DNA from: Macrostomum lignano | Lineage: Eukaryota | Direction: 5' to 3' | DNA length: 64,000 nucleotides | Assembly: GCA_002269645.1 (NCBI GenBank) | Contig: NIVC01000109.1 | Location: 483,670 to 547,669 of the forward strand | Shown here: piece by piece, positions 6,885 to 60,606 of the stretch | Layout: the number at the start of each line of letters is the position of its first letter | How positions within the stretch are numbered: position 1 is the first letter of the stretch | Program-made: the position numbers and the translations under genes | Notes under the pieces: generated by a model | Seen by the model: only the letters and a program-made list of their open reading frames with translations | What the model was told of the DNA's origin: nothing | The model's database searches: none

Positions 6885-6925
<41 letters not shown>

Positions 6926-6977
6926 GTCTGTCTGTCTGTCTGTCTGTTTGTCTGCCTGTCTGTCTGTCTGTCTGTCT
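6885..6977. repeat. (TCTG)n microsatellite immediately after the RNF213-like stop codon
   Basis: Direct tetranucleotide repeat visible in the sequence. Confidence 0.95.
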
Positions 6978-15775: not shown

Positions 15776-18700
<2,925 letters not shown>

Positions 18701-19602: not shown

Positions 19603-19789
19603 CAACAACAACAAAATTTTCTAACTTTAGGCCAGCAAACTTGTAAATTATAAAGCTTTAATCAAGCATTAGCTAAATGCAAAATGAGCGCGCTTGATGC
19701 TTGTAATGACCGTTGAAGGCTTATTCATATTTGCCACTGTCAGCCAAGCCAGTCAGCCAATTCCTATTGCAGTCAGCCAAGTAGGCTCT

Positions 19790-20110
19790 ACTTTGGATAC
19801 TTTCCAAGTAACTTGGAAGTAGACATAGGAAGTGTACTTTGCAAACTTGGAAAGTCAGCCAACAAGTAGACTCTAACTTTGGATACTTCCCAAGTAACTT
19901 GGATGTAGACATAGGAAGTGTACTTTGCAAACTTCCAAAGTCAGCCAAAGTAATCCCAACGGGAAATACTTTGAAAGTACTGCCAAGTAGAGATACATTC
20001 AAACATGACAAACTTCCAAAGTCAGCTAAAGTAATCCCAACAGGAAATACTTTAAAAGTACTGCCAAGTAGAGATACATTCAAACATGACAAACTTCCAA
20101 AGTCACCAAA
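19790..20110. repeat. Local duplications (two 81-bp tandem units and a ~55-bp dispersed direct repeat)
   Basis: caaacttccaaagtcagc...ttcaaacatga repeated at about 19929 and 20010; tttggatact...ctttgcaaact at about 19791 and 19878. Confidence 0.75.
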
Positions 20111-21949: not shown

Positions 21950-22850
21950 TCGAACAAAGTTGACAAAGAAGGCCTTCAGCAGCAGGTTAAAGTTGTCTAC
22001 AAACTGGACTCAATGCTTCCACAAACAAGTTTTCCCGACTTCTGAACTCTGTCAAAGATGGCAACGAATTATCTAAAGTCAAGAAGTAAAATACCCTGTC
22101 AAAGTCAGCAATGCACTGCAGTTTGCTGCTCAGATGGATGCTGGGATCCGAGTCGCTGATCATCCACATCCACATGAAAGTTCTTCTCTAGTAGTAAACG
22201 CACTTGTCGGACGCTGCAGTGCCGATAGCAAATGCTCCAGACTAAAGCCAAAAGTCCCAATCAGGACTCTGAAAATCATTGTGATGACCAGAGTAAGCAT
22301 TTGCCAAGAACAGCTAAACATTTGAGATTCATGTCATGCGAATTGTTTTTCTACAGTATACGAATCCAACTAAAATTGGTTAAGCCCATTTGTAGCGGTT
22401 GCATGACGGTAAACAGTAAACCTGAAGCATTTTTGAACGATTTTAGAGGCGGGGACGACGGTGCCGCATGCTTGGGTTCTTTGAATGGTGTACGCTGGAT
22501 GACCTTCTGAATGCGGGACTCCTGCTCATCGTCGTTCTTGCCATCACACAGCTTCTTGGCGTTGTTGATTCCAAGGCGTGTGTGCCTGTCTTGGGTGGGC
22601 AAGAAATACACCTGGCTCGGAAAACTCAAAATCGTCGCCATGTTGTACTGCGAGTAGCGTGAGCCACATAACGCAGATGTGAGAATCGATTGCAATGTAG
22701 AAAATTCAAAGAGGCTTGGAAGACCTTGTGCAATTAAATTGACAGTTAGGACACAACGAGCATGATTTAGCAAACAGCCAACACTCCGTCCAGCCTAGGT
22801 CGGTCTGGGCAGACAGACAAGCCTTCCAGCAAATCAAATAGCGAGAACTC
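21950..22850 (-). pseudogene. Degenerate third A/B unit of the RNF213-stalk-like gene
   Basis: 21950-22260 is clearly alignable at nucleotide level to 28316-28685 but carries deletions and frameshifts. 22450-22850 translates to LNHARCVLTVNL...SFPSQVYFL, weakly similar to exon-A starts (LLDAKCNITLSL...AIPSWKLFFL), with a frameshift. Confidence 0.7.
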
Positions 22851-23310: not shown

Positions 23311-26300
23311 TGTTGTGTTCTAATTAACACAGAGAGTTTCTTTGATTGAAGCTTTTGAGTTCAGAGATACACATCTCGCTCACAATATATTTATAGAGGT
23401 GAAACTCCTACTTGCACGTTGCATTGCCAAATCGATACGCAATCACCTACTCATTCTAGTCTGAGTACAGTATACGCCCACGCATTCAATAAGGTCAATA
23501 GTTAATTGTTAGTGGTCAGTTCATTGCGCAAGCATTGTCAGTCACAACATTCTCCCCCCTTCCGGAAGAGGATAACGCGCCGGTTGCCGTCGAGCTCGAG
23601 TTGACCTTCGAAGTTCAGGTGGAGGTGGCGGCTCGCCTGTCCGTGGGGGCGGAGCCGGCGGCAGCGGCAAATCGAACAAGTCGTCCTCTTGGTCGGCCGC
23701 GCTGTCGTCAGCCGGTGGGCTGTTGCACTTAACCAGCCGACTCGCTTGCCACTTTGTACCGTCGGACAGCACGAAGGTGTTGCGCCCTGCTCGGGAGGCG
23801 ATCTTTAGCGGTTCCTTCAGTCGGGTCGCCAGCTTGTGCGCTCGGTGCGGCGTCTGTCGCCAGACCCAGTCTCCGGCCTGGAGCATAGAGTCACGAGCCC
23901 GTCGTGGCCCATCTGGACAGCATGTCCGCGCACTTGTTGTCAGCGCCAGGGATGTGCTCAAACCGGACGTCGTAGCCGCGAAGTCTCTCGACCCATCGAT
24001 GAATGCGAAGAGGCCTGTGCCCCATGCCTTTCGAGTCGAGCAGAGTTGTCAGGGCCTTGTGGTCGGTGCGTAGCGTTACTCGTCTGCCGTATAAATAGTA
24101 GTGCCAGCGTTCGATGCTCCATACACAGGCCAGGGCTTCTCGCTCTCCGGCTGAGTATCGCTTTTCCGCTGGGCTGAGTGCTCTCGATGCGAACGCTATT
24201 GGCACCTCTTTTCCGTTTTGTACTTGGCTGAGCACTGCCCCCAGTCCGTCTAGACTTGCATCGCAGGTGACGTACGTCTCAGCTTGGCAGTCAAAATGAG
24301 CTAACACTGGGCTGCTGGTTACGGCTGACTTGAGTGTACGGAAGGCTGTACGTTCTCGCTCACCCCAGTGCCAGTCCGCGTCCTTTTTGAGCAGTTGTCT
24401 CAGAGGCTCGGCAATTGCTGAGTAATGCGGTATGAACTTGTGCAAAAAGTTCACTGCCCCGAGAAACGATTGAATTTGCGCGACCGTTGATGGCTCAGGA
24501 ATTCTTAGAATTGCGTCGACGTTGGACTTGGTCGGTTTGAGGCCGTCTGCAGAGATGACCAATCCGAAGAAATCCACGCTCGCCTGCCGGAATTTGCACT
24601 TCTCTCGATTGAGTGTGAAGCCTTCGCGATGAATCCGCCCTAGGACTTCTCGGAGGTTCTTGTCGTGCTCAGTCTCGTCCTTGCCGTGCACCAGGATGTC
24701 GTCCACGATGTTGATGGCGCCAGGAGCTCCTCGAAGCACCGTCTGCAGGGCTCGCTGGAAGGCAGCTCCGGAGCTGGATAGCCCGAATGGCACCACGGTG
24801 AACTGGTACAGGCCGGCATCGGTGATGAAGCACGTCAGTCCTCGAGAGTCTGGATGCAGCGGAATCTGCTGGTAGCCTTGACGCAGGTCCAGCTTGCTGA
24901 AGCACTTCGAGCCGTTGATGCTGGCTGATAGGTCCTCGATTGACGGTACCGGATAGCGGTCCGCGATCACCGCCTTGTTGACCTGCCGCAGATCCACGCA
25001 GAGACGAACCTTGTTGGACTCCTTCTTGCGCGTCACGACAACGTTGCTAACCCACTCGGACGCGTCGACCTTCTCAATGATGCCCTGTTGCTCCATCCGG
25101 CTGATCTCTGACGTCACTTCGTCCTTCAGGCCGATCGGCAGCTTCCGCATTGGCTGAGACACTGGCTTGACCGAGGCGTCGATCTTTGTCCGGTGAATGA
25201 AGCTCTTGGACCGGCCCAGACCGTCGAAGATTCCGAGGAAGTCGCGCTCGATCGTAGTCTCGCTGATGCTCATCACTCTGTTGTCACCTTGGAAGATTTT
25301 GAATCCGAGGGCCTGAAACAGGTCGCGGCCCAGGATGTTCGCTCCTTTGTCGGCGACGTAGAATGTGGCTTCTGTCCTGATGCCGTTGAACGTCACAGGA
25401 AGCTCGACCTTGCCGATGGTCTTGATCGCAGATCCGCCGTATGCCTCCAGTTTTGTGCTCGTCGGAAGCAGCGGGTGCCTAGCGAAAGACTTCTTGAACG
25501 TCTCCATGTTGAGCAACGAAACGGCAGCACCGCAGTCGATTTGCAGTCGAATCAGCTGTCCGTCCAGACGGCATTCGCAGAATAAGCTGTCTGTGCTCTT
25601 GTTGTTCACGGCCAGGACCGTCAGGCTGGACTCTGCAGGCTCTTTGGTGTCGATCGCAGAGACCGCTTTCATGCGGCACATTTTCGCGAAATGGTTCGTC
25701 TTGCCGCATCGTCTGCATTTCTGGCCCATCGCCTTGCATTCGCCCTTGTGTCCGTGGTTGCCTCCGCATCGAGTGCACTTTGGACCTGCTGCTGCGGTCT
25801 TCTCATGGCGAGCAGCTGGCTTCGGCTTCTTGCTCAGCGCCTTCACGTGGAGCTCTGGGCCGCTGACCTGCTTGGCGTCTCTGATGGCTGCTTCGATTCG
25901 CTCGGCCTTCTTGATGGCGTCATCTAGCGTCAGATCGTCCTCCTCCATCAGGAGTCTTTCCCTAATGCGAGGTACGCAGGTTTTCTCCACAAGTTGGTCT
26001 CGAATCATTTCGTCGTGAAAGGTGCCAAAGTTGCAGTTTGTTGCCAGTTCTCTCAGGGCCATCACGTAGTCTCCGATGCTCTCGCCGTCGTGCTGGGCTC
26101 GCTGCCGAAAGGCGAAGCGCTCTGCTATGACGCTTCTCGACGAGCTGAAAATCGCCTTCAGTGCCTTTTTGGTCTCCTGAAGCGACTTGCTTGCATCGAC
26201 GTTTGCAGCTCGGCGGCGTCCTTCCTCACCAAGCAGATGCAGGAGGATCGCCTTTTTCCGACTCTCTGATGCCTCTTCAAGAGCTCCAGCTACCAGGAAG

Positions 26301-26635
26301 TTCTCAAATGACTTGATCCACCTTGCCCATGGCACAGGAGGTTCGCCTGGTACTGGTTGAAACTCCGCTGGGTACGGGAGTCCGCTCGTCGCCATTTGTT
26401 GTGTTCTAATTAACACAGAGAGTTTCTTTGATTGAAGCTTTTGAGTTCAGAGATACACATCTCGCTCACAATATATTTATAGAGGTGAAACTCCTACTTG
26501 CACGTTGCATTGCCAAATCGATACGCAATCACCTACTCATTCTAGTCTGAGTACAGTATACGCCCACGCATTCAATAAGGTCAATAGTTAATTGTTAGTG
26601 GTCAGTTCATTGCGCAAGCATTGTCAGTCACAACA
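23311..26635 (-). mobile_element. Ty3/Gypsy LTR retrotransposon (Mag-like), integrase-deleted, 3325 bp
   Basis: 239-bp LTRs 23311-23549 and 26397-26635 (TG...CA, identical by eye); 5-bp TSD CAATA; PBS-like TGGCGACGAG next to the 5' LTR; PPT GGAAGGGGGGAGAA next to the 3' LTR. Confidence 0.96.
23891..26395 (-). CDS. Gag-protease-RT-RNase H polyprotein, ends just after RNase H
   Basis: ATG at 26395; Zn knuckles CTRCGGNH and CRRCGKTNHFAKMC; protease IDCGA; RT KLDLRQGY, PFGL, IVDDIL; RNase H CDAS...EREAL...TDHKAL...NKCADMLSR followed by a stop. Only the integrase C-terminal tail remains (GDWVW...RRSTRARRQP, ~23545-23910, other frame). Confidence 0.93.
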   Translation of the reverse strand: MATSGLPYPAEFQPVPGEPPVPWARWIKSFENFLVAGALEEASESRKKAILLHLLGEEGRRRAANVDASKSLQETKKALKAIFSSSRSVIAERFAFRQRAQHDGESIGDYVMALRELATNCNFGTFHDEMIRDQLVEKTCVPRIRERLLMEEDDLTLDDAIKKAERIEAAIRDAKQVSGPELHVKALSKKPKPAARHEKTAAAGPKCTRCGGNHGHKGECKAMGQKCRRCGKTNHFAKMCRMKAVSAIDTKEPAESSLTVLAVNNKSTDSLFCECRLDGQLIRLQIDCGAAVSLLNMETFKKSFARHPLLPTSTKLEAYGGSAIKTIGKVELPVTFNGIRTEATFYVADKGANILGRDLFQALGFKIFQGDNRVMSISETTIERDFLGIFDGLGRSKSFIHRTKIDASVKPVSQPMRKLPIGLKDEVTSEISRMEQQGIIEKVDASEWVSNVVVTRKKESNKVRLCVDLRQVNKAVIADRYPVPSIEDLSASINGSKCFSKLDLRQGYQQIPLHPDSRGLTCFITDAGLYQFTVVPFGLSSSGAAFQRALQTVLRGAPGAINIVDDILVHGKDETEHDKNLREVLGRIHREGFTLNREKCKFRQASVDFFGLVISADGLKPTKSNVDAILRIPEPSTVAQIQSFLGAVNFLHKFIPHYSAIAEPLRQLLKKDADWHWGERERTAFRTLKSAVTSSPVLAHFDCQAETYVTCDASLDGLGAVLSQVQNGKEVPIAFASRALSPAEKRYSAGEREALACVWSIERWHYYLYGRRVTLRTDHKALTTLLDSKGMGHRPLRIHRWVERLRGYDVRFEHIPGADNKCADMLSRWATTGS

Positions 26636-26814
26636 CAATACTTGTCATACAATGCCATTCTTGATACTTTAGTTACTGATAATAAAGGTAACAGAATACT
26701 ACATGCATACAATTAACAATTGTGTAATTTTTAGTACAAAATATTGTATATTAAGTAAAATATCTGTTTAGTCTTTTCTGTAACACCAGTAAACCCATTT
26801 TCCAGCGAGCATAC

Positions 26815-28700
26815 CTGGCTTAGTTTCGGTCTGGCTTGGCTGGATTTTGGTCTGCGGCATTTGATGAGATGCAGCGGCTGGTGATGTAGTAATCTCTGAT
26901 TCTCGAGCAACTGGTGCTGGGGATGCTGCAAATAATGACCTCCTTTTCACCTCTTTTTCACCGACGATGCCAATAGCAAGCAGTTTCGATGTCTCTCCAC
27001 GAGAGCCCATGCTGGCATGCAGCGTTTTTATGGAATTGATATGGCCATTGCACTCTTTAATCCGATCAATTAACTTTTTACCAGCCTTTCGTCGCTGGTT
27101 AACTTCATTCTGTATGTTGGCATCAGTATCTGCTGCTTCGAAATACTTCAAAGCTTGAAGGACCGACTGCTCGAGTGCCTTAACAGTTCTTGGCGAAGAT
27201 GACAAAAAACTTCTTAGTGCTTGCTGTAATGAAATTAAAGAGTTGATCACGAAAAGACTCAAGTCCTGTGCGATAGTATCGTCTGTGTTATCAAGTAACT
27301 GTTGGAAGTCGGATGACTGCTGCTCTCTCAAGAATGGCAGCGTTTCCTTTCTACACTCATACATACTGGCTAAGACTTCCCACACATTCGGATCGACACC
27401 ACCAAACGCTCCATCGACATCACGAAACACTTCTAAATACTCACTGAGTGATGCAGTGCTCTCGCAATGGCTGATGAACTCTTCAATAAGAGCCGTTGCG
27501 TCTTCATAGTTGATGAAGGCTTCTTTGCAGAAACTGGCTACATTCTTAGTATTCTCGTCATCAGAAACTTCACTAGCCGATGCATATGACTCTCCGGGTG
27601 AGTCAGCAGAACATTCATTTGACGTAAAAAACTCGGTGAGAAAGAACTGAAGCAGATGCACTCGACTGAGCCAAATGTCGCGCAGCTGGATACTGCGAAG
27701 CTTTTCAACAATCGAACTGGAGATGCCAAGTTTAGAGACAATGCCCTCCTCAAGCTTAAACTCGATTTTTGAGCCCTCGGAAATAAATGATTCTATACTT
27801 TCTAACAATAAGCTTCCTCTCTCTACCTCAACCCAGAACTGCTTGTAGGCAGTGTATGCATCAGGTAGCATTTTGTCAAGCACATAGCTGCACTGAACAG
27901 TGATCTGAGCTCCTGGTCTCGAATAGACTGCAGATTGAGACTCGGCTTCAAACAAATTGCGTGAGCCACCAGAAGCAGGCTTGGATCGGACAAACACTCT
28001 CCTGAACAACTCAGATTGGACAAGTGACTTCATTAATTCAAGGTTCTGCACATTTCTGATTTCGAATATCTGAAAAACCAAATCATCGCTTCTAAAAGAA
28101 CCAATTGAGTTAAAAAACTGCTGCTTCAATGACTGGTATCGAGATTGCTTTTCGTTCAGGTCAAGCAGCTTTAAGTTCATTTGAGAGTTTTCTCCCGAAA
28201 TGAGGAACAGAAAATCAAAAATTTGGTCAACAACAGCGCACTGCTCGTTCCAGCTTCTTTTATTTTGCTCTAAGCAACGTACAGTTTCTTCTGTATGTCC
28301 ATCTCGACCAAAGTTGACAAAAAAGGCCTTCAGCAGCAGGTCAAAGTAGTCATACAAACTGGACTCAATGCTTCCACGAACAAGTTTTCCCACCTTTTCG
28401 AGTCTTTCAAAAATGGCAACGAATTCTCTGAAGTCAGCAAAAGACAAGTGCTTGTCAGCATCTCTATTGAAAAATATGCTGGCAAAGTCAGCAATGCACT
28501 GCAGTTTGTTGTTCAGTTTCAGACGAACAGCCTCTGCAAGCGGTTGGATGCTGGGATCCGAGTCGCTGGTCATCCACATCCACATGAAGTTCTTCTCCAG
28601 CAGTAAAGGCAGCAGCTCCAACGCATTTGTTGGACGATGCTGGCTTGGCTGTGCCGAAAGCAAATGCTCCAGACTGAGCCCAAAAATCTGATAGAGTGAT
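26815..28700 (-). CDS. Exon B2 of RNF213 N-terminal stalk-like gene
   Basis: Acceptor ttttcag at 28701, in phase with exon A2; ORF open to 26768 with an internal GTATGC donor at 26814. RIKECNGHINSIKTLHASMGSRGETSKLLAIGI resembles RNF213 KLRDSARNLEWLKTVNESHGSVERSSLTLATAI as I recall it; FLREQQSSDFQQLLDNTDD...INSLISLQQAL fits invertebrate RNF213-like stalks. Confidence 0.68.
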
Positions 28701-29760
28701 CTGAAAAGTATGGTATATTTTTCATTAAATTATTAAGGATCAAGTAATTTCCAACCTATCATAAAATACATGAGCGGAAAAGCAGAATAAAAGCTGGCAC
28801 GAGGTCAGACGCGCATTTTATAATGCGTGTAGAGTGTTGGCGAGGCAGCAGAAAAAACTTAACTGGCATGAAATATTTTCTACTTTAAATTTTGTTACAA
28901 TATTAAGTATAGTTTACTGTATAATAGGCTAAAATCGAGGTTACACAGGCGTTGTAGAAGAAACAAGGAATATTAAAGCCTTTGAACTAAAATAATACTG
29001 TGGCAGCAATCCTAATTAAAATACGAGCAACTGAGGCATGATTCTCCTCTCAGCGATAAACCATTCAGTAAGCGCTCTGTTTTACCTGCAAACAACACCA
29101 CAATTTTGAATTCATTACACGCCGAATTCTGTTGGGACCCCCACCGAAATTAACTATCTCCTGTAGAGGCCAAGATGCTACAAAAAATTTACAAATTTTG
29201 TTAATCTTACTCACAAATAGTGAACCACGAGCATAAAGTATAAATACGGTGTTTCACTTAAAGCTCCAAAACAGTCCTGCTTATGATTCCATTAGAATGC
29301 GACCCCGTAAAAATGCTATCTGTAAGTCAATAAAAGCATGACAGCTAGCCGTCCATCAGTATTGTTATCGTTGGGCATTTTTCCAAGGTTATATCAAAAT
29401 GCTCAAACAAGGTGACAGCTTTTTGTAGCTCGTTGACATTTTTTAAAATCATCTGACATCTGACACCCAGCTATTAGAAAAAGATTACAAATACATGATC
29501 CGTGACATCTAAATCTAAATGAACTAGTAGGCTAGCTCCGAGGAAAGGCCGGCGCTTCGTTAAAGAAATAAAAAGTCTCTTTTACTCTTACCTATCGAGG
29601 ATGGGATAACCGTTTGCATGATACTTGCTACTAACCGAAGACTACTTTTACCGATTGAAGACTACCAGAGGACTATTTTAACTTCTGTTAAAATCAAGCA
29701 ATAGGGTTTTTACTCGTATTTGTGTCTGGGCAAATTGAAATTGGAATTGCGGCTTTAAAC

Positions 29761-31308
29761 TAGGGGGCGACCGGGACAGCCAAAGTCGGGCCCGGGTCGG
29801 GCCCGGGAATGAGGACTCGGGCCCGGGTCGGGCCTCGGGAATTCGGGACAAGATCTTTAGGACAGCTCAATAATTGGAAAAAAAATCATAATAAATCTTA
29901 ATACTTTTAGCATATGCGGATTACTATTAAATATATAATAAATATATAGATATATTAAATCTAATATAATATATTAAATGTATAATAAATATATGATAAA
30001 CATTAAATATATTATAATATATAAATATATTAAATATATAATAATATATAAATATAATAAATATAATATATTAAATTAAATATATATTAAATATATAATA
30101 TAATAAATATTATTTTTATTTAATACATTAGTTAAGACTTCAGAATAGATAAGAGTTACATTAAAAGACTTAATACTCAAATATCAATATACCCAATAGT
30201 TCAAATTCAATGTCACTGTGTGGCACAAGTACTGTGTGTGTGCCAGTGACAGTGACACTAATAGGCAGTGAGGTAGGCAAGCAGGCACTGCGGTAGTGCG
30301 GCTGGCACTGGCAGTGGCAGTAAGCAAAAAGAAGAAAAGCTGAAGCATTAAGTGTAAGGCACTTGGCATTGGAAGCAATAAGGAAGTAAGAACCAAATCA
30401 ATTGATTGATTCTTTTATTTGAATTTTTAGTTCCTTTACATAGCTTCAATATAAAGAGCCATGTATACAGTCAGTATTCAATAAGACAACAAGACAAGAC
30501 AACAGAACAGAACACAAGTGAAGTGACAACACAACACAACACTCAACTGTCTCAACAGAACAGGCAAACAGACAATGGAAATACAAGTAATTAGCTGATA
30601 CCTGCCTACCTGCTCACCTACCTACCTAAACGAATATGATTACGAATATGATACTATGAGTCTACGACTACAACTACCTACGAATACAATACAAATATGA
30701 ACACGATTACAAACTCTGACAGATAGCAAACTTCTTGGAAAAATGGTAGCCTTGGCCCTTAATAGGTACTTCTTGGAATGTAAATAGGAAATGTTATTTA
30801 CAAAAGCTTAAAATTGACAAATCAACTTTTTTAAGAATCATATTTTTGCTTTTAGGCTGCAGCCTACAGCGTGTAAAGTGGAATCAATATTGCAAAAAAG
30901 TATTGCAAAACTATGTTTTAATTTTATCTTCCTGGAAAAAATCCGATCTTCCTGGAAAGTGGAAACTAGCTGTGGCTGACGCTCACGGTCACAGTCACAG
31001 ACGCTCACGCTAAGAGCATACTACAAATCAATGATATTGCTACTTCACATCATATCATCTATTACTATTACTGCAGTCGTGCAGTGCTTGAGTCTTGAGT
31101 GCTGATGCGATGCTTAACTGAGTGTTGTGCTGTGCTGTGAATAAAAATAATTTTATTCTTATTCGCACGCGGTTAGTGCCTTTAGGGAAAAAAGACTTGT
31201 CCCGATTTCCCGACTTTTTTAGGGTCGGGCCCGGGCCCGGGTCGGGCCACGATTTTGGTCGGGATTCCCGACTTTTCGGGCCCGGGCCCGGGACTGGGTC
31301 GCCCCCTA
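29761..31308. mobile_element. Non-autonomous hAT-type element in an intron, 1548 bp
   Basis: TIR TAGGGGGCGACC / GGTCGCCCCCTA, subterminal gggcccggg repeats, perfect 8-bp TSD CTTTAAAC (29753-29760, 31309-31316). Confidence 0.9.
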
Positions 31309-32030
31309 CTTTAAACAAGCCTATTTTTTCTTCAATTCTTTAAGTCTCCGTCTATCTACCAGTTATGTGCTAAGGACTGACTCTTTATTCTATTTAAATG
31401 ATTACGCTCGTAGAATGAAATTCTAATACAAAAACCCATCCATATGCCAAGAACGACTTAAGTAGATCGGGAAGCTTTGTTTTTACTTAAAATGATTCAT
31501 GAAAATTTACATATCTTACGATCATGTGTAACTAAAATATACACTTCGTTCTAATTAGTGCCAACCACTTAAAGCGAAATTGAACTAGGCGTATTTTTTC
31601 GATAACTGCCAAAGCCTCTTCAGAATTCTTGCTAATAAGAAGACGACAAAGAATTTATCTTATGTATCTTACACATGTATCTTATCCTATTAAATAAGCA
31701 TTCGTCGATCTCCTAAAACTTAGCTATTGCTATTCTGTGTTTAAAAGTGACAATTTTCTTTCTCAGTAGTATCGATATTATTTCGCACAAACCCAGCCTT
31801 AAACTTTTTCTATAAGAAATAAAGTTACACGTCTACATCAGTGGTCCTTCCAACATGCAAGATCCATTACTGACAAAAGCTGTTTTATGATGCCTCATTA
31901 AATGAGGAACAAGATGATTTTAAATGACAAAAAGTGCTGGATAAGCGACACTAGAACAGACGAAAATCCTAGCAATGTAAAGATCAAGGTGCTATTAACA
32001 ATTATGAAGAAATAAAATTGAGGTTCCTAC

Positions 32031-34078
32031 CTTGACAAGTCATCAGTGCAAAATACATCGTTCGGATGCTGAAAGAACTTCAAAAGCTCTTCTTTTTGCT
32101 GTTTTTCGAAGCCGCTATTGTCACTAACTTGTTGCAGACAGACTTGGAATACAATGTCAGTGAGATCAGCAGACTTTCCATCTTCAACATTGCTTTCAAT
32201 CACTGCTCTAGTCAGCCTCTTCTCATTCAAAACTTCAAGTGCTGCTTCCTTGCACAAACTGACGAGAGAACTCTTCTGTGACATCTCAATGAGTGGCTTT
32301 ATCGTTGCACACACGGACTTGTGCAGGTAGTCACAACTCAACCGAATAAACTGCCACATTACATTTCTTTGCTGTCCAACATCGGCTGCTAAAATATGTG
32401 CTACAAAAAAATCTGCGAAATTCCCGAGGCAAAACTTGATCAGCCAGTGCGTCTTCGATGAAAATATGATAGACAAGAACTCGATTGCGAAATTTTCATC
32501 CAAAAAACCTTTGATGCCAAACAATAGAGCCAGGTCACGGCGATTGGGCGCTGAATTGTCATTCTCGTATTTTGAGCTTATCGATGCAATTATGGCTCTC
32601 CGAACAACAGGAAGAACCTGCTCGTGCCACACTGACTCCTCGACACAGTACAATTTCTTTACTCTTTGATAGATGTCACACAACCGCTGCCAAGAATCTG
32701 TCTGCAGCTCAGCTAAAAGTTTCGTGTACATCAATGAGGATCCAAAACTCTGAACCCAATCCTTGAGCGAAACACTCAAAATTTCAGAAGATTCGAAGGC
32801 GCTCAGCGTCTCATCAGCGTCTTTAATCTTTAGAAATTCTTCGAGCAGCGATTCGAAGCTCGTGAAGTCTTCTGCGTCATTAAAAACTGCGGCTGCAATG
32901 CTCACAAAGTTGCTGCAGCTGATGCACTTGAGCAATCCAGATTTGACCAGAGCTTCAGTAAAATCAGTTCTGAACTTGTCGCCACCTCGTTCAACAAATC
33001 CGAGATTCTTCACAAGCTGTACGAACTCACCAGGTGGTGCAGACGGGTGCAGTACCTTGGCGCAATAGCACAGACTCAGGAAAGAAGGCAGCGACGAGTC
33101 TAAAAAGCGCATGGCCTGTGAGCTGATGCTTTTTATTGCGGGCTTCTGCAAGAAACTCAAAAGCAGAGTGGCCTCGTCAATTTTTCTAAAAGACTTGTTT
33201 TCTGGAGCGAATCTGACATGAATGAAGAGCGACAGTCGGCACAGCAGAATTCCTCCTCCCGGCTTCAGTGGGAACTGCTCTGCAAATGGAGGACTCAGCA
33301 TTCTCTTGATGACGGATAGGAACTCAGTCGTATTGACTTCAAGCGCTTTCTTGCTATCATTCTCTGTGACACTTCTGAGCCATTTGGACACGAGGGAAGA
33401 GTAGCACTGATCGATAAATTCGACTGGATCGCTGCTGCTTACTAGCGATGTTGAGTCGGCCATGGCCAGTGAGACTGCATGAGAAGCGAATATCCGCCAG
33501 AACACGTTGGACTTTCGGACAACTGAATCAATGAACGGCTCAAACAGAGCGTCGAAACATACTAGTCGGTCTCTGTTGAGAGGCCGACTTTCCAGTTCAC
33601 TAATCATGCCATCAGAAGGTGCAATACCCCTTTTAGAACAGCATTTGAAGATTGTTTCTAGAATATTGGCACAGTTATTCACAGCTCTTTGAATTGGTGC
33701 TGAAACAGACGGCCCCATATTTTTCAGCAAATCTTGGAACTGTCTTTGATTGGTCAATTCTAATATCGGATTTCGACTGTGCAATCTGTAACTATAGACA
33801 AAGTCATCAAGTCGCTCGGATAGAAAGAACAGTTTCCAAGACGGAATCGCATAAAAATCTTTAATGGAATCCACCTGCTTTTTCAATGAAAAAGATCTGT
33901 TGGTCTTCTTTACGCAAATAGAGAGCGAAAGTGTAATGTTACACTTAGCGTCTAGAAGCAACGTCGATAGAGTTTTATTAAGTTGCTGATTTTCTGAAGC
34001 GTCCCTCTTGGCATTCAAAACCTCATCCAAAGTAAACTTGACGACGTCCGCGATATACAGACGGAACTCGCAGGGCGT
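32031..34078 (-). CDS. Exon A2 of the stalk-like gene (helical, ~683 aa)
   Basis: ORF 32027-34084; acceptor ttgcag (phase 0) and donor GTAGGA (phase 2); colinear protein similarity to exon A1 (EFRLYIADV, ELESRPLNRDRLVCFDA, FLDSSLPSFL, WQFIRLSCDY). Confidence 0.78.
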
Positions 34079-34334
34079 CTGCAATAGTAAACATAAAATA
34101 TTATCAAAGTAATTCAGCTTTACTGAAAGTGCCTTTGTAATAATTAAAATAAACTATCGGACTTCAAGCATTGCCAGTCTTTTTGCATCTTTGACAGGAT
34201 ATGTAAATAATGATACACCATCGCAGTTGTTTAAAGTTTTTGAATTTGAGGTACAGGATTTGGCCAAATAGCTTCTTTCAATCCTTGCAGCCATCTGCTG
34301 ATCACTGCATGACTGAGGAAATATGGACTCAATC

Positions 34335-35570
34335 ATGGATGAAGGAATAACATGGGTTGCTCATCTGCCGAGAGTCTATGGTCAGCGTTATGGAGTATAT
34401 ATATATACATGTACATATACATCCGTACTAACGCTATTGGCTGATGAAGTCTATAAATAGTCCCCCTACTAGTTCGACTGGCTGCTGAAGATTGAAAGAA
34501 TGAACGTTTGAACTCTCGGATCTCCCTTTCTGGCAAAATCACGGCATCTAGGAATTCCCTAAGCAAGTGCCGAAGTAAGTCTAACTCGTAAGTAGTGACT
34601 ATGAATAGACTTCATCAGCCAAGGGTTAGTACGGGGGTAAATTCCAGAACGCTGACCATAGACGCTCGGCAGACGAGCAATCCATGTTATTCCTTCATCC
34701 ATGGACTCAATTTGACAGGAAGGGTTTACTATGAATCAGCACTGAAGCTTACAACGTTTTACCATAGACAAGACACAACTATATAAGGGATCTTCAGCAG
34801 CCAATCGGTGCAAACGGGGGCTTCACAGGCATGGATGAAGGCTTGTACCATGACCTTTGTGCCCGCTGGGCACTTATTCTTGCCTTTTTAATGCCATAGA
34901 CTACATTTAAGCCCGCTTGCAGGAAAGAAATATCGATATTAGCGGGCAGTTAATGACATTTAACGCCCGATTGTCTATGTCAAACTTACTTTAATGCAAA
35001 TTAGCGGGCATTTAATGACATTTAACGCCCGATTATTCTGTCCCACTTTGTTAAGGACACAAATGTCTATGGCACAATAATAGTAATACCCATGCTTTGC
35101 GGGCGTTAATGAGAAATCCTCGGGCGCCCTCTGATTTTCCCATTAACGCCCCTAAAGCATGGGTATTAATGTACTAATAGAAAGGATCGCTCATCTGAAT
35201 GCAAGTCTATGGCCAAGACTTCCTAAAAATTGGGATACTCCCCCGTGAATTCATTGGCTGCTGGAATTTAAAATAGTCCCCCTTATGTCCTTTATGGCTT
35301 AAGCTTGTACGCGGGGATCGAGAATGCTAATTTCTTTTCCTTAAGCCGTGGTGACCTAGAGGAAGAAAGCAGTTAAAGATGTCTTACGTTAATCGTGACT
35401 TTGGAATTTCCCTCGCGTCCAAGCTTCAGCCAGTAAGAACTTTGGGGGAACTATTATTAAATTCCAGGAGCCAATAAAATTCATGGGGGGAATATCCCAA
35501 TTTTTAGAAAGTCTTGGCCATAGACTCGCTTTCAGATGAGCGATCCTTTCTATTCCCTCATCCATGTTCA
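34335..35570. mobile_element. Modular multi-palindrome (foldback/MITE-like) element
   Basis: Inverted pairs 34335-34382/34655-34705 and ~35178-35250/35465-35560, plus small cgggc.gttaa..ttaacgcccg hairpins; no ORF. Confidence 0.55.
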
Positions 35571-36094
35571 CAGGGCAAAATTGCATCCCCAACTTTAAGG
35601 CAGACGAGCAATCTATGGTTTTATTCATCCATGACTTCAAGCTATTTTAATATTATTTTTCTAAATATAATTTCCATAGATCTTATATTTGGAAATGTAA
35701 ACGGCTTCCATGGCCACATAAGTAGTTAATGAGTGGCCCATCTTGTGTAAATAGATCTTTGATCCTTCCCTAGATTTGTCTAGGTCTTAAGCTCGTACAA
35801 AAGCCAGTGGTGTATCTATTAGGTAGAGTTTTTATATTAGTAAATTTTATATATTATAGAGTGGTGACTTTCGTATAATACGCAAATTAATTAAAAGCAA
35901 TAACAAAGGTTTATGCTTTAGTTACCCTCATTTCATCGTACGAACATTTGTCTACCAACTTAAAATTCCTTCTAAGGTGCTTTATATTACCAGCTTGACT
36001 CACATTCGAATAAACTCAAAATAAATTTGCATTTGTTTGACCTTATTTGTCTTAAAAGGCAGGAAGTAATGAAGTCGTTAAATGAACAGAGTTC

Positions 36095-36251
36095 CAGACG
36101 CGTAGCCAGGATTCACGTAAGGGTGGGGGACAGATTAACTCAATCCATCTCCGATGTTAGCGATAGAAGCAAAATACAAAGGCAATAAAAAAATTCCCCC
36201 CTCCAGGGGGAAATGTCCCCAGTGTCCCCCCCCCACTTGGATACGCCCCTG
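36095..36251. mobile_element. hAT-type MITE, 157 bp
   Basis: Imperfect TIR cagacgcgtagcc / ggatacgcccctg; 8-bp TSD CAGAGTTC on both sides. Confidence 0.75.
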
Positions 36252-36420
36252 CAGAGTTCTACGAACATACAACAGCGCTTACATATGCTTTCTTGCTACA
36301 TTCGTCCAACCGTAAAAATTCTTGACACATCAACCAAGGTTCCTGCAAAGTAGAGAAGTTATAAGATTGTACGTGTTAAAAAGTATAAATATTTTTTCTA
36401 AACGTATATTGGATACCTAC

Positions 36421-37420
36421 CCTAAAAACTGATTGAACAAATCGATCCGAAAATCCAAGTGCGTTGACAGCTTTAGCTTCGACCCGGCTGTTAAATTTGG
36501 TGTCTCCATCAATATCAAGTTCTCTTCTGGCCTGTTCCGTAGTCATGGCACCTGTATCAATCGATGTCCATAATTTTTTACATGCACCGATTGCAGGGGG
36601 AATCAGTTTATCCAGCAGATAGCGGCATTGAACACAGACGATAACGCTTTTCACATTCAGTCGACTTTCCTCAGGATCTTCGGCACAGGAAGATAAGTTG
36701 CATTTAATGAGCATTCTTTTGAAGATCAAAGATTCGGCAAGGGAATTTAGCAATTCCATATTCAAAATACTATCGATTTCGAAAATCTGCTTAACGAGAT
36801 TGTCACTTCTAAACTCGACAGTGATTGATGTTTCATACTGCAGCTTCAGATCTTCATACTGTGACTTTCTGTCATGCAAATCGGGGAGTTTTATCTTCAC
36901 TTCATCTGTTTCGCTGCTGACTCGGCTCAGAATTTCAAATACTTCATCAACCATATGGCACTGTTCATTCCAGCTTCGAACGTTGGCTTCGTGAAACTTC
37001 ACCAGCTGAGTGGTATTCTTACTCTGTTTAGCACTGGGAAAGAATGCAGCTAAGAGTTGGTCAAATAAGCCGTAAGACCGGCCTTCATTACTGCTGTTCT
37101 TTTTCCCTCTGCGATTCATCTCCAGTGAATCAAAGACGCAGACAAAATCGTTGAACTCTTGAAGGGAAACACCTTCAGCATCAGCTTCAGCAGATAATCT
37201 CTTCGCAAACTCTTTGATGCACTTAATTTGAGCTCCAACACGAAAAAATAAATTTTCTTTTAAAGATTGGATGTCCGAATGCGAATCTCCGATCATCCAT
37301 GTCCAAAGAAAACTTTTCTCAAATAGCGTAGGCAGCAGGTCGAAAACGGTCGGCGATCGATGATTTGGTAATCCTGCAATAAACTTCTCCAGAACAGCGC
37401 AGTAAGTTTTGTACACATGT
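36421..37420 (-). CDS. Exon B1 of the stalk-like gene (corresponds to the 5' half of B2)
   Basis: Acceptor cattgcag in phase with exon A1; LLPTLFEKSFLWTWM...EQCHMVDEVF...FRSDNLVKQIFEI aligns with B2; GTAGGT donor at 36420 (phase 0). Confidence 0.75.
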
Positions 37421-37493
37421 CTGCAATGACAATATTGTGGTACAATTAAAGTTCTAGATTTTATGTTAGCAATAATTTAAATACGTTTGTATG

Positions 37494-37846
37494 CAGGGGC
37501 GGATTTAGGGGGGCGGGGGGGCGGGCCCCCCCCCCCAAAAAAAATAGCTTGACCGAACATATTGCGCCCCCCAAAAACCTAAATTTGCGTCCCCTAAGCT
37601 TGATTTTTCGCCCCAAGTGCATTTTTTGCGCCCCTAAGCTTGATTTTTCGCCCCCAAATGCATTTTTTGCGCCCCTAAGCTTGATTTTTCGCCCCCAAAT
37701 GCATTTTTTGCGCCCCTAAGCTTGATTTTTCGCCCCCTACACACATTTTTTGCGCCCCCTAGCTTAAAAATTGGCGCCCCTTACACTCGTGTTGGCGCCC
37801 CAAACTTGGACCGCCCCCCCAAAATGAAACTCTAGATCCGCCACTG
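37494..37846. mobile_element. hAT-type MITE with internal ~41-bp tandem repeats, in the A1-B1 intron
   Basis: TIR CAGGGGCGGATTTAG / CTAGATCCGCCACTG; flanks tttgtatg and gttgtatg (7/8 TSD match). Confidence 0.8.
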
Positions 37847-37961
37847 GTTGTATGTAACAATAAATCTAAATTTAGAAGACTCAGAGTCAATAGATACGAC
37901 TATGGCAATAAAATACACGTAGATACTACGAAGAGACTTGCACATCGGCAAATAAACTTAC

Positions 37962-39955
37962 TTGTAAAGAAATTCACTGGAAAAAGCAGGTGCATTCTCT
38001 TGCAACCAATCCAGAATCACATCTGTATCGCTTTCATTACTTGAAGTAGAGATTCGTTGGTAAAAAGTTTCGAAAATGATACGCAATAATTCAGCTGTAT
38101 TCTGCTGTGCATCTCGCATGTTGATCTCAATTGAAGCTTTGGTAAGCGGCTGTTCAGCCAGCAGACTTTTGCCGCAATCTAAGCAAACAGTTCGGAAATG
38201 ACAATTTTTGGATCTCTCGAGCAAGAATGACACTACAGAACAGGTTGACTTGCAATAGTAGTCACAACTTAGACGAATAAACTGAGCCAACACAGCAGGA
38301 AGCTCATCTGAGTTAGAAGCTTCAATATGGCTCAAAAGTGCCGAGTCGAAGGCGTCGAGACATAATTTGATCAGCCACTGGCAGTCCGAGGAGAAAACTT
38401 TGGACATGAATTTCAGAGTGAATTGTTCATCAAAAAATCCGCTCAAGCTGAGCAAGTCATTCAGAGCTCGTCGGTTTGATGCAGAGTTTTCGTTTTCGAT
38501 TTCAGACCCGATTGAGTCAATGACTGCAGCTCGAACGACTGGAACTCCTTCGGCATGCCAAAGCATCAAACTCTCGCACTGCAGGCTTTTAGCCTTTGCA
38601 GTTATTTCGCAGAGTGGCTTCCATCCTTCTGTTTTGAGTTCAGCCAGCTGCTCGTTAAACAAAACCTGAGAGCTGCAGTCTTTCACCAATTTTAGCGAAG
38701 AGGAATCTAAACATTCGGAAGACTCAAACGCTTTCACTGTCTCTACCACTTCATTGATTGTTAGGAACTCAATCAGGAGATCGCTCAAAGCTGAATTACT
38801 CTCTGCATCGTGGAACATTGAGCTGAAAATCACAACAAAATTATCTGAGTTCAACTCTCGGACAAGACCGGAACTTAGAAGAAACTGAGCCAAAGCAGAT
38901 CTGAACTTGTCCGCTGCGCGCTGGATGAATCCGAGACTGTCGACAAGCAGAATAAAGTTTGCAGGAGATTCAGAAGAATGCAGCAGCTGGGCGCAATGGC
39001 AGAGGTGCAGAAACGATGGTAAATACGAATCCAGAAAGAAAACTGACTGAACATCAACAGAACCCAAATCTGGCTGTTGAAGGCATTGCAGTAACCACTG
39101 AGCTGCATCTTTAGGCCAGAAAGTGTCGCCATCAGCTTCGAATCTTTGGTGAATATGCAGCGAAACTCTACACAGCATCAGCTTTCCACCGGGCTTGAGT
39201 GAACCAAAACCAGCTGAAAAATATTGCGTGACGGCTGAAATAAATTCGACTGACTCTGCCGCGATTTGGTCGGTGATAACAGACTCAATCCATGTTTCAA
39301 TGAGCACAGCACAGCATTGATTGATAAATACAGATGGCTCAGAATTGTCAAGCACAGTTTGACTACCAACACCAGCTAGTGAAGCAGCATGGAAGGCAAA
39401 GATTTTCCAAAATAAAGCTGGTTCTCTTGCAATGGACTGCAGGTATGGCCGAAGAAAGGCGTCAAGGCAAACCCGTCTGCCGGCATTCAAAGGACGAATT
39501 TCGAACTCCTTCAGTGCACCATCGATAAGACGAGTACATCGGTTCGGACAGTTCTGGACGATGATGTCAGATATTTTAGCAGCAGAAACTGTAGCAGCAA
39601 CACCTGTTGAATAGGTAGCGTCCATCTGCTTCAAATCAGGAAATGTTGCAGGTTGGTCGCAATTGCTGAGCTCATAGCAGTATTCACTGCTAACAATGTC
39701 TGCGGCGAGAATAAAAACTCGCCACACAGGTAGTGAGTAGAAGTCACAAAGCTTTCTGATTTTGTACTCAATGGAAGAAGATTGATTCCGTTTGGTATTT
39801 GTTAGCACTAGCAAAGCTGTCATATCACATGTGGCATTGAGCACAGCACTGATGAGTGCATTCTCCTCGTCAACTGAAAGATTTTCGCCCTTTGAAGCCT
39901 GGTCAAGAAAATGTCTGGCTACATCCGCAATGAAGAGCCGAAATTCGAATTCGAC
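37962..39955 (-). CDS. Exon A1 of the stalk-like gene (~664 aa)
   Basis: Acceptor cattttag (phase 0), begins VEFEFRLFIADV; GTAAGT donor at 37961 (phase 2); includes ORF 37958-39844; paralogous to A2. Confidence 0.78.
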
Positions 39956-40404
39956 CTAAAATGAAGTAAATATCAGTATGATAGTCAATCATTTGCCAAA
40001 AGAGCAACTACGTACAAGGGTAAAGCAGCTTCTGTATCGAATCAAATGAAAAGGTTTAGGACCAAATATAATACATGTATAAAGCTTAGCTTTGGCCAAC
40101 AAGATGTACACACAAACAATCTCTAATCCTAGTAAATGAGTATGCTAATTCACTCACATAGCAGGACTGAGCACTCGGTAAAAGTTGAGCGTAGTCAGTT
40201 TCTTGTATGCACCAGCTCTACAATTCAATCGAAATTTTTGGTGTTGTGCTTATATTTAAATATGTAAAATTAGATATAAAATTAGAGGCATGAAATTATA
40301 GGTATTATTTGTGCGTACTTAGTACAACTATCTGGTACAACTTTATCAGAGCAAGCCTATTTGCAGAAGATGAACCAAACAATTTATGATAAAACAGTAC
40401 TCAC

Positions 40405-40684
40405 TAGTTCGAGTGCAGATTCACTTGGTGATGCTTTGATTGACTGGAACAGAGCTCTAACACATGGGCAGGTTTCTGGACTAAACTGGCAAGACCCAAC
40501 CGTAACACTAGCTGGGATTTCAGGCAAGGCAGAGTTTGGAGCAACTAGTGGGTCCGGTGGAACCTTTGGAATCCTGAGCCGACGCGCTGGTTGATGGCTG
40601 GCGGCATCATCAGCTGCTGCTTCTGAATCGGAGCTACCTGACTGCTGTCGCGCTCTCAGAGAGTCTTGCTTTCGAGCACGCTTT
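40405..40684 (-). CDS. Low-complexity 5' exon of the stalk-like gene
   Basis: ttttttag acceptor, GTGAGT donor, 280 nt open, phases match both neighbours. Confidence 0.62.
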
Positions 40685-40805
40685 CTAAAAAACAGAATAT
40701 TTAGAGATAAAAGCAGGCTACATCTGCTGAGAAGAGCGACAATATGAAGCTAAATTCCCAATAACTAGATTATGGTCTAATTTGATTCCCTGCTTCATCA
40801 CTTAC

Positions 40806-41226
40806 TCGAGACTTCGCAGCTTCCTGCGAGCAGCCGTGTAATAAGCCTTGCCCAGAATGACACGGAAGAACTTCAGTCCCTTCACTTTCGGCTGCACATG
40901 CTCAGTCAGCCACAGATTTAGTTGGCCAGAGTCCAGAAACTTCTTTAGCTGAACCAGCTGCTGGCTGCTGGTCACATCGAGGCTGAACACAACCCGAGAC
41001 AGTCTACTCAGCTCCTTGGCTTCGTCGCATTCTAAATCATCACTGCTACTGCTGCTGGAGCTGCTCTCAGATGTTGATGCAGTTTCAATCTCGATGGTCT
41101 TTAGACCGCCAGTAAATGGTAACAAATGGGACAAATCGCTTTTTAACTGTAGAAGGCACCTGCGAAGCCTCTTTAACACTGTAGCGCTGGCATTGTACTT
41201 TACAACAGCTGTCTCCTCATACGGAA
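40806..41226 (-). CDS. 5' internal exon of the stalk-like gene (needs an upstream phase-1 exon)
   Basis: caattttag acceptor, GTAAG donor, includes ORF 40802-41179; phase 2 end matches the 40684 exon. Confidence 0.62.
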
Positions 41227-43382
41227 CTAAAATTGATTAGTAAGTAAGATGCTTAAATGATATTTAACAGTCAGTGACAAAGGACAATGATACAGATTGG
41301 ATTACTTAATCAAGATTGAACAGGTAAGGAGTTCAGACATTTTTGGCTTTGAGGGTTACTATCTGCACTAGATTGGCCTATGCTGGGAGGGTGTTTGTTT
41401 GCTATATTATGCTAGATACACTATCTCTACATATAAAAATCAAAACTCTGTGTGTGTGTTTGTGTGTGGACAATTTTGATCGCTATGGACTCCCAAACCG
41501 CTCAACCAAATGACACCAAACTTTACACCCACCCTAAACTCACTACGGAGAATGTCTTAGGCTACCTTTAAATTTCCTAAATTTGAGTCTTCCTACCTAA
41601 AAGTGCAAAAAACTGCTTAAAATGCGCGATTTTTTCACTAAATCCTCCATAGCGCCGCTCCACTTCTACCGATTCTCTTCAAATTTGACACAGATAATCT
41701 TAAACTATTTTGGCACAATCGTGTAAAATTTCAAGTCTCAAAATGAATCCTAAACGGCTGTGTGCACTTTTAAAGTTAGGCTGTTTTTTTCAGCGAGGCA
41801 GCCACCCCAACCTCCGCCCGCCTGCCTCTCTTTCCCGATCTGGGCCCAGATGTGTAAAAGGGTTTCAAAATTGACTAACTTTCAGCTGCCATAAGTTTGC
41901 TCCACGTAAAGTTTGCTGACTTCAAACTTGACACAATTCTTCACTGACCAATTCTCTATCTAAATGTAAAGTTTCAACTCTGTAACTCAACCGAAAAAGA
42001 AACTGTAAGCATGTGAAGTTTGTCTGCTTTTTCTGTTGTTTGTGCCACTCACTCACTCATTGCCCCAGAGCCAGACGAAGGGTCAGGCGATGGGACTGAA
42101 TGTACATAGCAAATGTACAGTGTTTTGGAATATCTTTATTTATAGCCTTCTCTGCACCCCGCGAGTGGAGAGGCGTAGAGAGGAGAGACAGTTTAGCGAG
42201 AGATTCAAACCACTGTCCTCTGTATAGACACAAGTCTGCAGCAGTTTAACAGTGGATGGCAATTGGCAATTGGCAAATCGAGGGAATCCACTATCCAGCA
42301 TGGTTTGTAAAAGCGAAAGATTTATGAAAAGGCGATGCGATGCAATGCAATACAACCCTACTAAATTGGGCACACCATGGAAATTTTAGGTTTCTTTTAA
42401 AGGTACTGTGTAAATATTAAATGGCCTCCTAAGAAATGCGTATTTCCTTGGTTGTTAGACTGATGCAGACTGCAGTGGAGCTGAAGATACAAAAATTCCT
42501 TTCAGGGCTGCAAATTGGCAAGAAAGATGACGTGATCAAAGCATGAGAACAACCATGAGAGTATTACGTCCCACAAACTGGCTTTCCATGCAGGGATGGG
42601 CAGACTTTTACCTCAAAGGCCAGATAAAGAATCCAGCTCATAGCTGAGGGGCAGATGAAAGTGGAAGAAGAAGGAATAGACGATTCGAAGAGAGGAGAGG
42701 CGACAGAGGGGATAAAAGAAAAGATAAAAGATAATAGGAGAGATGAGGGGGTGAGGACGATGAGAGAGAGGGGGAGAAGAGGGGAGAGAGGAAAAGCGAG
42801 AGGAGAGAGTAGAGATGAGAGAGCAGAGAGCTGCAGATGAGAGGAGAGAGCAGAGAGCAGAGAGGAGAGCAGAGAGGAAACAGGTGAAAGAAGAGATGAG
42901 AGAGTAAAGGGAAGAGAGAAGAGATAAAGATACATCTCTACATCTCTAAGGTTGTAGAGATGAGAGAGGTGGAAGGAGAGATGAGAAATGAGAGATGAGA
43001 GATAACGGAGAGAGGAGAGTGGAGTGAGAGAAGAGAGGGAGACAGAGTATAGAAAAGGGAAGAAAAGAGAAAAGAAGAAAGGAGAAAGGAAAGTGAGGAG
43101 TCAAAAGAGGGGAAAGAAAAGAGTACAGAGGAGAGAGGTGAGAGAACATATAAGACAGAGATGCCAGATTAAAGAGGGGGATGAAAGAGCAGAGACGAGA
43201 GTGAACAGATAAAAGATGGGAGAGTAGAGAGAACAGAGGAGAGGTTACAGAGACGAGAGGAGAGAGGAGAGACAAAGGTAGAGAAGTGAGTGAGAAGAGA
43301 GGAGAGGAAAGAGGAGAATGGAGAGGGAGAGAGTAGAGAGAGGAGGAGAGATAAGAGAGAAAGACAGAGAAGAGAGAGAGAT

Positions 43383-60560: not shown

Positions 60561-60606
60561 CAAGAAAAACAGACAAGCTTAATGATGGTATCAATTGGTC
60601 CTCCAT
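60561..60606 (-). CDS. Speculative first coding exon (MEDQLIPSLSLSVFL) of the stalk-like gene
   Basis: ATG, 46 nt, GTAAGT donor, phase 1 matching the acceptor at 41226; CpG-rich stretch at ~60950-61060 upstream. No homology support. Confidence 0.25.

Follow-up and report, generated by a model that had tools for sequence, protein, structure and literature searches.

A probable chimeric stalk gene from a cluster of RNF213-like paralogs in Macrostomum lignano

We analyzed 64,000 nucleotides (nt) of the Macrostomum lignano genome (contig NIVC01000109.1 of assembly GCA_002269645.1, positions 483,670 to 547,669; hereafter the window), a eukaryotic stretch rich in transposons and simple repeats whose minus strand carries a putative gene with two tandem units of stalk exons (A1-B1 and A2-B2) linked to RNF213. 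RNF213, a disease gene, encodes a giant ubiquitin ligase of innate immunity whose N-terminal stalk has a poorly understood role. In the solved protein, six AAA units form a dynein-like core, AAA3 and AAA4 carrying Walker motifs, and the C-terminal part holds an E3 module (RING/RZ finger). Reading the splice sites from the DNA, we joined eight GT-AG exons on the minus strand into a coding sequence of 7782 nt, or 2593 amino acids (aa), whose sole stop codon is the terminal one.

When an A+B profile was run with HMMER against the full set of 1.84 billion representative proteins, only four relatives came back, every one from M. lignano. Word-index searches with A2 and B2 gave a sole match, P0001 (M. 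lignano, UniRef A0A1I8GHU5, 85-88% identical); they missed P0122 (3411 aa, 86% identical), which the exhaustive HMMER sweep recovered, and the lack of a match in the word index is therefore uninformative for this family. P0122 is PAA67123.1, the product of BOX15_Mlig007995g5, and is referred to below as the full-length paralog or parent; its source, the Mlig_3_7 annotation, was built from a genome-guided transcriptome assembly (PMC5730564). A further model, P0123 (A0A1I8GWE3, 1492 aa), was 92% identical to unit 1 of the window. The exons of the window gene, in the order 60606..60561, 41226..40806, 40684..40405, A1, B1a, B1b, A2 and B2 on the minus strand, and the stop-free frames that contain the units are as follows.

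60561..60606, minus strand: exon 1, an ATG plus 15 codons (MEDQLIPSLSLSVFL) with a phase-1 donor (G/GTAAGT), an exact match to the P0123 N-terminus that completes the e1 frame.
40806..41226, minus strand: exon e1, the N-terminal domain, 98.6% identical to P0123 and 31% identical to the P0122 N-terminus (E=3e-15).
40405..40684, minus strand: exon e2, a spacer rich in Ser, Ala and Pro whose donor is in phase 0; P0123 splices from a donor farther upstream, near 40558.
37962..39955, minus strand: exon A1, part A of the first stalk module, 664 codons, with a phase-0 acceptor and a phase-2 donor, 39% identical to A2 and ~89-92% identical to P0123.
36421..37420, minus strand: exon B1a, 333 codons from the start of a B exon up to the donor AGG/GTAGGT, 35% identical to B2 residues 9-322.
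36283..36342, minus strand: exon B1b (the x exon), 60 nt, phase 0 at both ends, homologous to the mini-exon lying ahead of exon A in the full-length gene.
32031..34078, minus strand: exon A2, part A of the second stalk module, 682 codons; its identity to Mlig007995g5 exon A is 81.6% in protein and 85% in DNA.
26948..28700, minus strand: the homologous part of exon B2 (584 codons), whose last residues are GIVGEKEV and which matches the beginning of the giant exon in the parent with 90.8% aa and 88% nt identity.
26768..26947, minus strand: a read-through tail of 59 non-homologous codons plus TAA, past a rearrangement breakpoint.
39955..37962, minus strand: stop-free frame A1, 664 codons.
37476..36379, minus strand: stop-free frame B1, 366 codons.
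34153..32030, minus strand: stop-free frame A2, 708 codons.
28729..26771, minus strand: stop-free frame B2, 653 codons.

GT-AG was kept in all seven introns of the stalk gene, and neither a stop codon nor a frameshift interrupted the 7.8 kb of coding sequence. The two A exons were 39% identical over 621 aa (E=8e-151), and the two B exons were 35% identical over the first ~320 residues only (E=5e-55); A1 and B1 were 37-39% identical to their counterparts in the family. The splice phases, read from the DNA, were alike in both units (A acceptors 0, A donors 2, B acceptors 2), so an earlier reading made from the sequence alone was right to describe long, stop-free, strongly diverged A/B paralogs with matching phases. 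B1 itself comprises only the first 333 B codons and an ancestral mini-exon, and a relaxed tblastn search found no counterpart of B2 residues 334-590 near B1. The B1 donor is in phase 0 (AGG/GTAGGT, last exon base 36421) and is followed by a 78-nt intron and then by B1b, the donor of which is compatible with the phase-0 acceptor of A2 (34078). The sequence-only reading had proposed a single multi-stalk protein of ~2500 aa, and both the 2593-aa frame and P0123, which joins B1b to A2, agree with such a product; the route differs, however, in that B1 joins A2 through the 60-nt B1b exon. Because e1 begins in phase 1, a further exon upstream was required, and we located it at 60606..60561 by means of the N-terminus of a relative, 19 kb upstream of e1 across a transposon-filled intron 1. 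The gene interval of 26768-41226 given earlier was thus too short at its 5' side.

The P0122 locus (L001) lies on the M. lignano contig NIVC01001505.1, where the following exons bear on the comparison.

17553-17615: exon x, 63 nt.
18068-20125: exon A.
From 21261: the giant exon, which holds B, the rest of the linker, the AAA core and onwards.

The exon order of the parent is N-terminal domain, low-complexity spacer, mini-exon x, A and giant exon, and the giant exon opens with B and spans ~11 kb through the AAA core and the remainder of the gene. A frameshift near L001 27755-27806 truncates the P0122 model. A2 and B2 of the window aligned to L001 in reverse, with 85% and 88% nt identity, and ~300 nt of intron beside the A2 donor and the B2 acceptor aligned as well; the copy is therefore a segmental duplicate made at the DNA level. 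With 86% protein identity and 85-88% DNA identity, introns included, Mlig007995g5 has the same x-A-B order and phases as the second unit of the window, and RNF213-like paralogs of this type have the N-terminal domain, the x, A and B exons, and the intron positions and phases in common with the window gene. B1b aligned to L001 17553-17615 (EPWLMCQEFLRLDECSKKAY versus DSWVEPQDFLDLDEDHKKFY; 10/20 residues identical, translations compared by eye), and since B1b is homologous to x, the splice from B1b to A2 is the ancestral x-to-A splice.

Together, the gene models P0123 and P0001 reproduced all junctions of the window gene but e2-A1, where P0123 has the earlier donor inside e2. P0123 follows the same exon 1-e1-e2-A1-B1a-x order at 92% identity, with the exon 1-e1, e1-e2, A1-B1a, B1a-B1b and B1b-A junctions, the last of which reads DESSKKAY/MPFEFRLYIADV into the next A exon. 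The A2-B2 junction was seen in P0001 as predicted, from DDLSR at the end of A2 to SLYQIFG at the start of B2. Further B and A units follow in P0123: after 49 A residues it jumps to a B unit only 71% identical to B2 of the window, and then a third A begins, so that P0123 is, as modeled, a multi-unit stalk array, although the model is a 1492-aa fragment, internally deleted, and as such supports real splicing only weakly. The younger-type units, namely unit 2 of the window, P0001 and P0122, were roughly equidistant (85-87%). Look-ups found no contig on record that encodes P0001, P0123 or the B2 open reading frame (ORF).

We then compared the 3' end of the window gene with that of the parent. Homology to the full-length paralog stops right after GETSKLLAIGIVGEKEV, the end point noted in the sequence-only reading: the alignment of B2 to L001 ends sharply after GAGGTG (GIVGEKEV) at 26948, and unrelated sequence follows with 59 codons to a TAA. 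P0122, with its single A+B unit at residues 549-1816 (86% identical to A2+B2), continues unbroken as 'GIVGEKE-VIRFLIKTPQ...' into the AAA core. Since the L001 exon runs on past the break into the linker and the AAA core, the 'tail' in the window, earlier singled out as a low-complexity feature, is read-through past a rearrangement breakpoint within the parent's giant exon and not a domain. As had been remarked before, this strand has neither an AAA nor an E3 region farther down: tblastn down to E<1 found nothing on the minus strand across the window that resembles the C-terminal region, the AAA core or what remains of the linker. Residues 1817-2724 of P0122 (908 residues) and an ORF on the plus strand (see below) likewise had no tblastn match on the minus strand. 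AAA-like sequence was absent from the minus strand of the window and from the 2593-aa model (Pfam; tblastn), and no RING or zinc-finger domain was found in the scanned ORFs A1, A2, B1, B2, e1 and e2. Farther downstream lies a relic of a third B exon.

21893..22288, minus strand: B3 relic, an acceptor and ~130 codons, frameshifted, with tblastn pieces in three frames and 70-73% nt identity to B2 and L001.

Oriented like B2, the B3 relic attests that partial duplication had already occurred in an earlier round.

The connection to RNF213 is made by the parent. P0122 residues 2528-3394 matched human RNF213 2428-3332 (E=1e-117), including the Walker A motifs of AAA3 and AAA4 (GETGCGKT and GKPGCSKS). 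RNF213 was not matched in the PDB (phmmer and profile searches) by A2, by B2 or by a profile of three A sequences, nor by P0122 residues 1567-2527, and Pfam returned nothing for A or B. An AlphaFold2 model of A2 from a three-sequence alignment had a predicted local distance difference test score (pLDDT) of 60.8, and the B2 model (five-sequence alignment) one of 36.2. The Foldseek comparison proposed in the sequence-only reading could be made with the low-confidence A2 model, and against the PDB it gave generic alpha-solenoids with template modeling scores (TM) of <=0.26 among the 50 matches listed, and no RNF213. The RNF213 similarity earlier ascribed to A and B was found neither by sequence against solved RNF213 nor in this one fold search with a poor model, and the tie of A+B to RNF213 is firm though indirect, given only by contiguity with the RNF213-type AAA core in P0122.

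There, the A+B unit sits directly before the AAA core, in what would be the position of the N-arm and most of the linker of RNF213/mysterin (6TAX, 7OIK, 8S24). Mouse RNF213 has an ordered N-arm at residues 475-1290, described as a 'string of helical bundles', and a linker at 1291-1774 (PMC7311170). AAA3 is offset by ~170-190 residues against mouse numbering, which would place A+B at about mouse residues 360-1630, and we infer, assuming no large indels, that A+B corresponds to the ordered N-arm and most of the linker. The term 'stalk' is used here as a positional assignment; it is consistent with the prediction that the window unit is all-helical, as are the helical bundles of the RNF213/mysterin N-arm. 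Unlike RNF213, the window gene is without the AAA ring, the hinge and the E3 module, and has two tandem stalk modules instead of one. No sequence similarity was detectable between the window unit and the vertebrate RNF213 N-arm or linker, and a CBM20-type domain was not detected in the window gene. A literature search found no paper that mentions RNF213 in Macrostomum.

To gauge selection on the reading frame, we calculated the ratio of nonsynonymous to synonymous substitution rates (dN/dS). The M. lignano paralog (85-88% identical) was chosen for this comparison because synonymous sites between A1 and A2, at 39% protein identity, are saturated. Pairwise against the full-length paralog, A2+B2 gave a dN/dS of 0.275 (bootstrap 95% interval 0.22-0.33), where at least ~0.5 would be expected had the window copy drifted neutrally since the split; the ratio averages both lineages and the time before and after truncation, and a recent truncation would give the same numbers. 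By exon, dN/dS was 0.35 for A2 and 0.18 for B2. Cut more finely, A gave 0.39 in one half and 0.31 in the other, and B gave 0.20 over codons 1-333 and 0.15 over codons 334-584. All five indels between A2+B2 and the parent were multiples of three (3, 3, 3, 6 and 9 nt), and in neutral simulations of 1269 codons the frame stayed stop-free in 0.15% of runs at 5% divergence and in 0/2000 at 10% or more. These comparisons go part of the way to showing that purifying selection, as far as the sequence tells, kept the frame open during most of the period since unit 2 and the full-length copy diverged. The earlier claim of selection on an ATPase-less, ligase-less derivative holds to this extent; the signal may stem from the period before catalytic loss.

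We consider it probable that the minus-strand gene is a chimeric stalk gene from a cluster of RNF213-like paralogs, with two tandem stalk modules, its catalytic parts lost and its frame kept by selection. The predicted product would consist of an N-terminal domain and two all-helical stalk modules, without an AAA ring and without a ligase module. The parent has a single stalk unit and a B exon that runs ~11 kb, whereas the window copy ends at codon 584 and is fused upstream to an older paralog; the B1a-to-x junction is new, with an intron of only 78 nt. In the simplest history, two deletion or illegitimate-recombination events would have occurred in a tandem paralog cluster. In the first, an old paralog, contributing its N-terminal domain, A1 and codons 1-333 of B1, would have been fused to x of the following copy, with the 3' part of the one and the 5' part of the other lost; the second would have cut the giant exon of that following copy at codon 584. 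The old paralog would thereby have supplied exon 1, e1, e2, A1 and the first 333 B1 codons, joined ~50-78 nt upstream of the x exon, which would then lead into the younger second unit of A2 and a B2 cut short. The B3 relic and the three-unit P0123 model suggest that such rearrangement happened repeatedly.

Next to the breakpoint lies a retrotransposon with long terminal repeats (LTRs).

23311..26635, minus strand: LTR retrotransposon inserted 130 nt past the stop codon of B2; its 242-nt LTRs differ at one position, and its target-site duplication is 5 bp long (CAATA).

By its sequence, this element is a very recent insertion. Its ORF had gag, protease, reverse transcriptase and RNase H matches and no integrase match. 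The B1a-x fusion is shared with the M. lignano model P0123 and would therefore be older than this young insertion. The age of the fusion bears on another explanation, that the locus is a recently disabled pseudogene, in which a recent deletion or rearrangement took away the rest of a complete RNF213-like gene that had A2-B2 as its 5' part, the frames reflect past selection only and the locus is decaying. The break within an exon followed by arbitrary read-through codons would fit such decay, as would the nearly new LTR element 310 nt away, the dead B3 relic farther downstream and the transposon-rich setting, and dN/dS does not date the truncation. We nevertheless think a pseudogene unlikely: the B1a-x-A2 fusion is common to P0123, from which the window gene is ~8% diverged in protein, so that this rearrangement is old, with intact frames on both sides of it, and the 7.8 kb of coding sequence has retained GT-AG in all seven introns without acquiring a stop codon or a frameshift.

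Two genes instead of one would be a more doubtful reading still. Unit 1 (exon 1 to B1b) would end soon after B1b, and A2-B2 would be expressed alone, for instance through trans-splicing of a spliced leader to the acceptor of x or of A2. Trans-splicing is reported for 38.8% of M. lignano genes, and many multi-gene transcriptional units are known (PMC5730564); the DNA also reads into a stop 7 codons on if the B1b donor is unused. A2, however, has no upstream homolog of the N-terminal exons of the family, and its first Met lies ~115 residues in (by eye). Moreover, the parent gene carries out the x-to-A step by ordinary cis-splicing, all phases from B1a through x to A2 fit together, and the units are joined in P0123.

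At the left edge of the window, on the opposite strand, lies a convergent neighbor that is context and not part of the stalk gene.

3..6884, plus strand: RNF213-like gene, the 3' part of a giant exon from AAA3 onwards.

Its ORF (138..6884) matched human RNF213 2708-3331 (E=1e-73), and window positions 3..6977 aligned forward to L001 25746-32711 at 96.4% nt identity, with the adjoining intergenic DNA at 92%. Two compensating 1-nt indels at ~102 and 143 put a TGA in the frame of this neighbor at window positions 117-119, either a real disruption of the 'complete' copy or an assembly error. Against L001, the plus-strand ORF had a synonymous rate (dS) of 0.095-0.125 and a dN/dS of 0.10-0.14, and A2+B2 a dS of 0.24; the proportion of synonymous differences (pS) was 0.096 for the plus-strand ORF and 0.206 for A2+B2 (z=7.4). 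From this twofold difference we reasoned that the plus-strand gene is the close counterpart of Mlig007995g5 and that the minus-strand unit is an older paralog. It is accordingly very improbable that a single gene, its 3' part flipped through an assembly artefact or a true inversion, makes up both the stalk array and the plus-strand AAA/C-terminal ORF: A, B and AAA are collinear on one strand of NIVC01001505.1 and on opposite strands in the window, and P0122 1817-2724, which the window lacks, could sit just left of it, but we rejected this reading on divergence (85-88% nt identity for A2 and B2 versus 96.4% for the plus-strand ORF, with the pS values above), the breakpoint is followed by unrelated DNA and then by an LTR element with an intact target-site duplication and no assembly gap, and three roughly equidistant copies of the younger-type unit make extra stalk copies expected. 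A processed (retro-)pseudogene is ruled out by the seven retained GT-AG introns, the intron homology to the parent locus and the intact frame.

Besides the averaging inherent in dN/dS, several points weigh against a selected chimeric stalk gene. The locus is known here from DNA and computed gene models alone, and two of these models, P0123 and P0001, are of uncertain provenance with odd internal deletions. A and B have no direct similarity to the solved RNF213 N-arm or linker, and both AlphaFold models are too poor to judge the fold. With a young LTR element 310 nt away from the breakpoint, the region has been active recently; the stalk of the plus-strand gene itself is placed by conjecture, presumably left of the window; and a function as a non-enzymatic binder, decoy or scaffold is speculation.

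The remaining features lie in the introns of the stalk gene. Within intron 1, an intact 622-aa ORF at 52907..54775 (plus strand) has a MULE transposase domain and a C-terminal RING finger, and two adjacent ORFs at 44594..46432 (plus strand) with zinc-finger, DUF4371 and hAT dimerisation domains resemble a hAT-type transposon with a broken frame. The segments 41424..42000 and 47088..47675 of the same intron form a 92% identical repeat beside large GA/CT-rich low-complexity blocks; the recurrence of this arrangement along the intron, with GA-rich blocks at ~42-44, 48-49.7 and 58-59.7 kb, suggests a tandem unit several kb long. The A1-B1 intron holds a 41-nt tandem repeat (37569..37765) inside an element rich in G/C runs.

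If the chimeric stalk gene is translated as predicted, its product would probably act non-enzymatically; it could bind the ligands or partners of the stalk of the full-length enzymes and thereby serve as a competitor, buffer or scaffold for them. Among the regions of RNF213 in primates, the N-terminus and the stalk show the strongest enrichment for positively selected sites and have been discussed as a ligand-contact surface (PMC11549300). By analogy only, the arrangement recalls truncated or decoy immune paralogs (the integrated decoy, the truncated NLR), in which likewise a partial duplicate keeps the presumed recognition or scaffold part beside a full-length relative; the enzymatic or signaling part would be lost in both. 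A bolder version, in which the double-stalk protein is an expressed and selected, non-enzymatic member of the RNF213 system, a free 'stalk' that shares its microbial or cellular ligands or partners with the full-length AAA-E3 machines and serves these as a decoy, buffer or adaptor, with stalk modules shuffled between Macrostomum paralogs as an evolvable recognition cassette, seems to us unlikely as it stands.

What the locus means depends on which of these readings holds. As a by-product of segmental duplication, it would represent ordinary turnover in a gene cluster. For annotation it carries a warning: the stalk, without detectable similarity to vertebrate RNF213, is unrecognizable without the full-length paralog. 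RNA interference and transgenesis are established in M. lignano. If the chimeric stalk gene is real, the locus would be a chimeric, truncated paralog in an expanding immune-type gene cluster, and a selectively maintained stalk-only protein would be a natural separation-of-function allele in a laboratory-tractable animal, which would mean that the stalk can have a function of its own.

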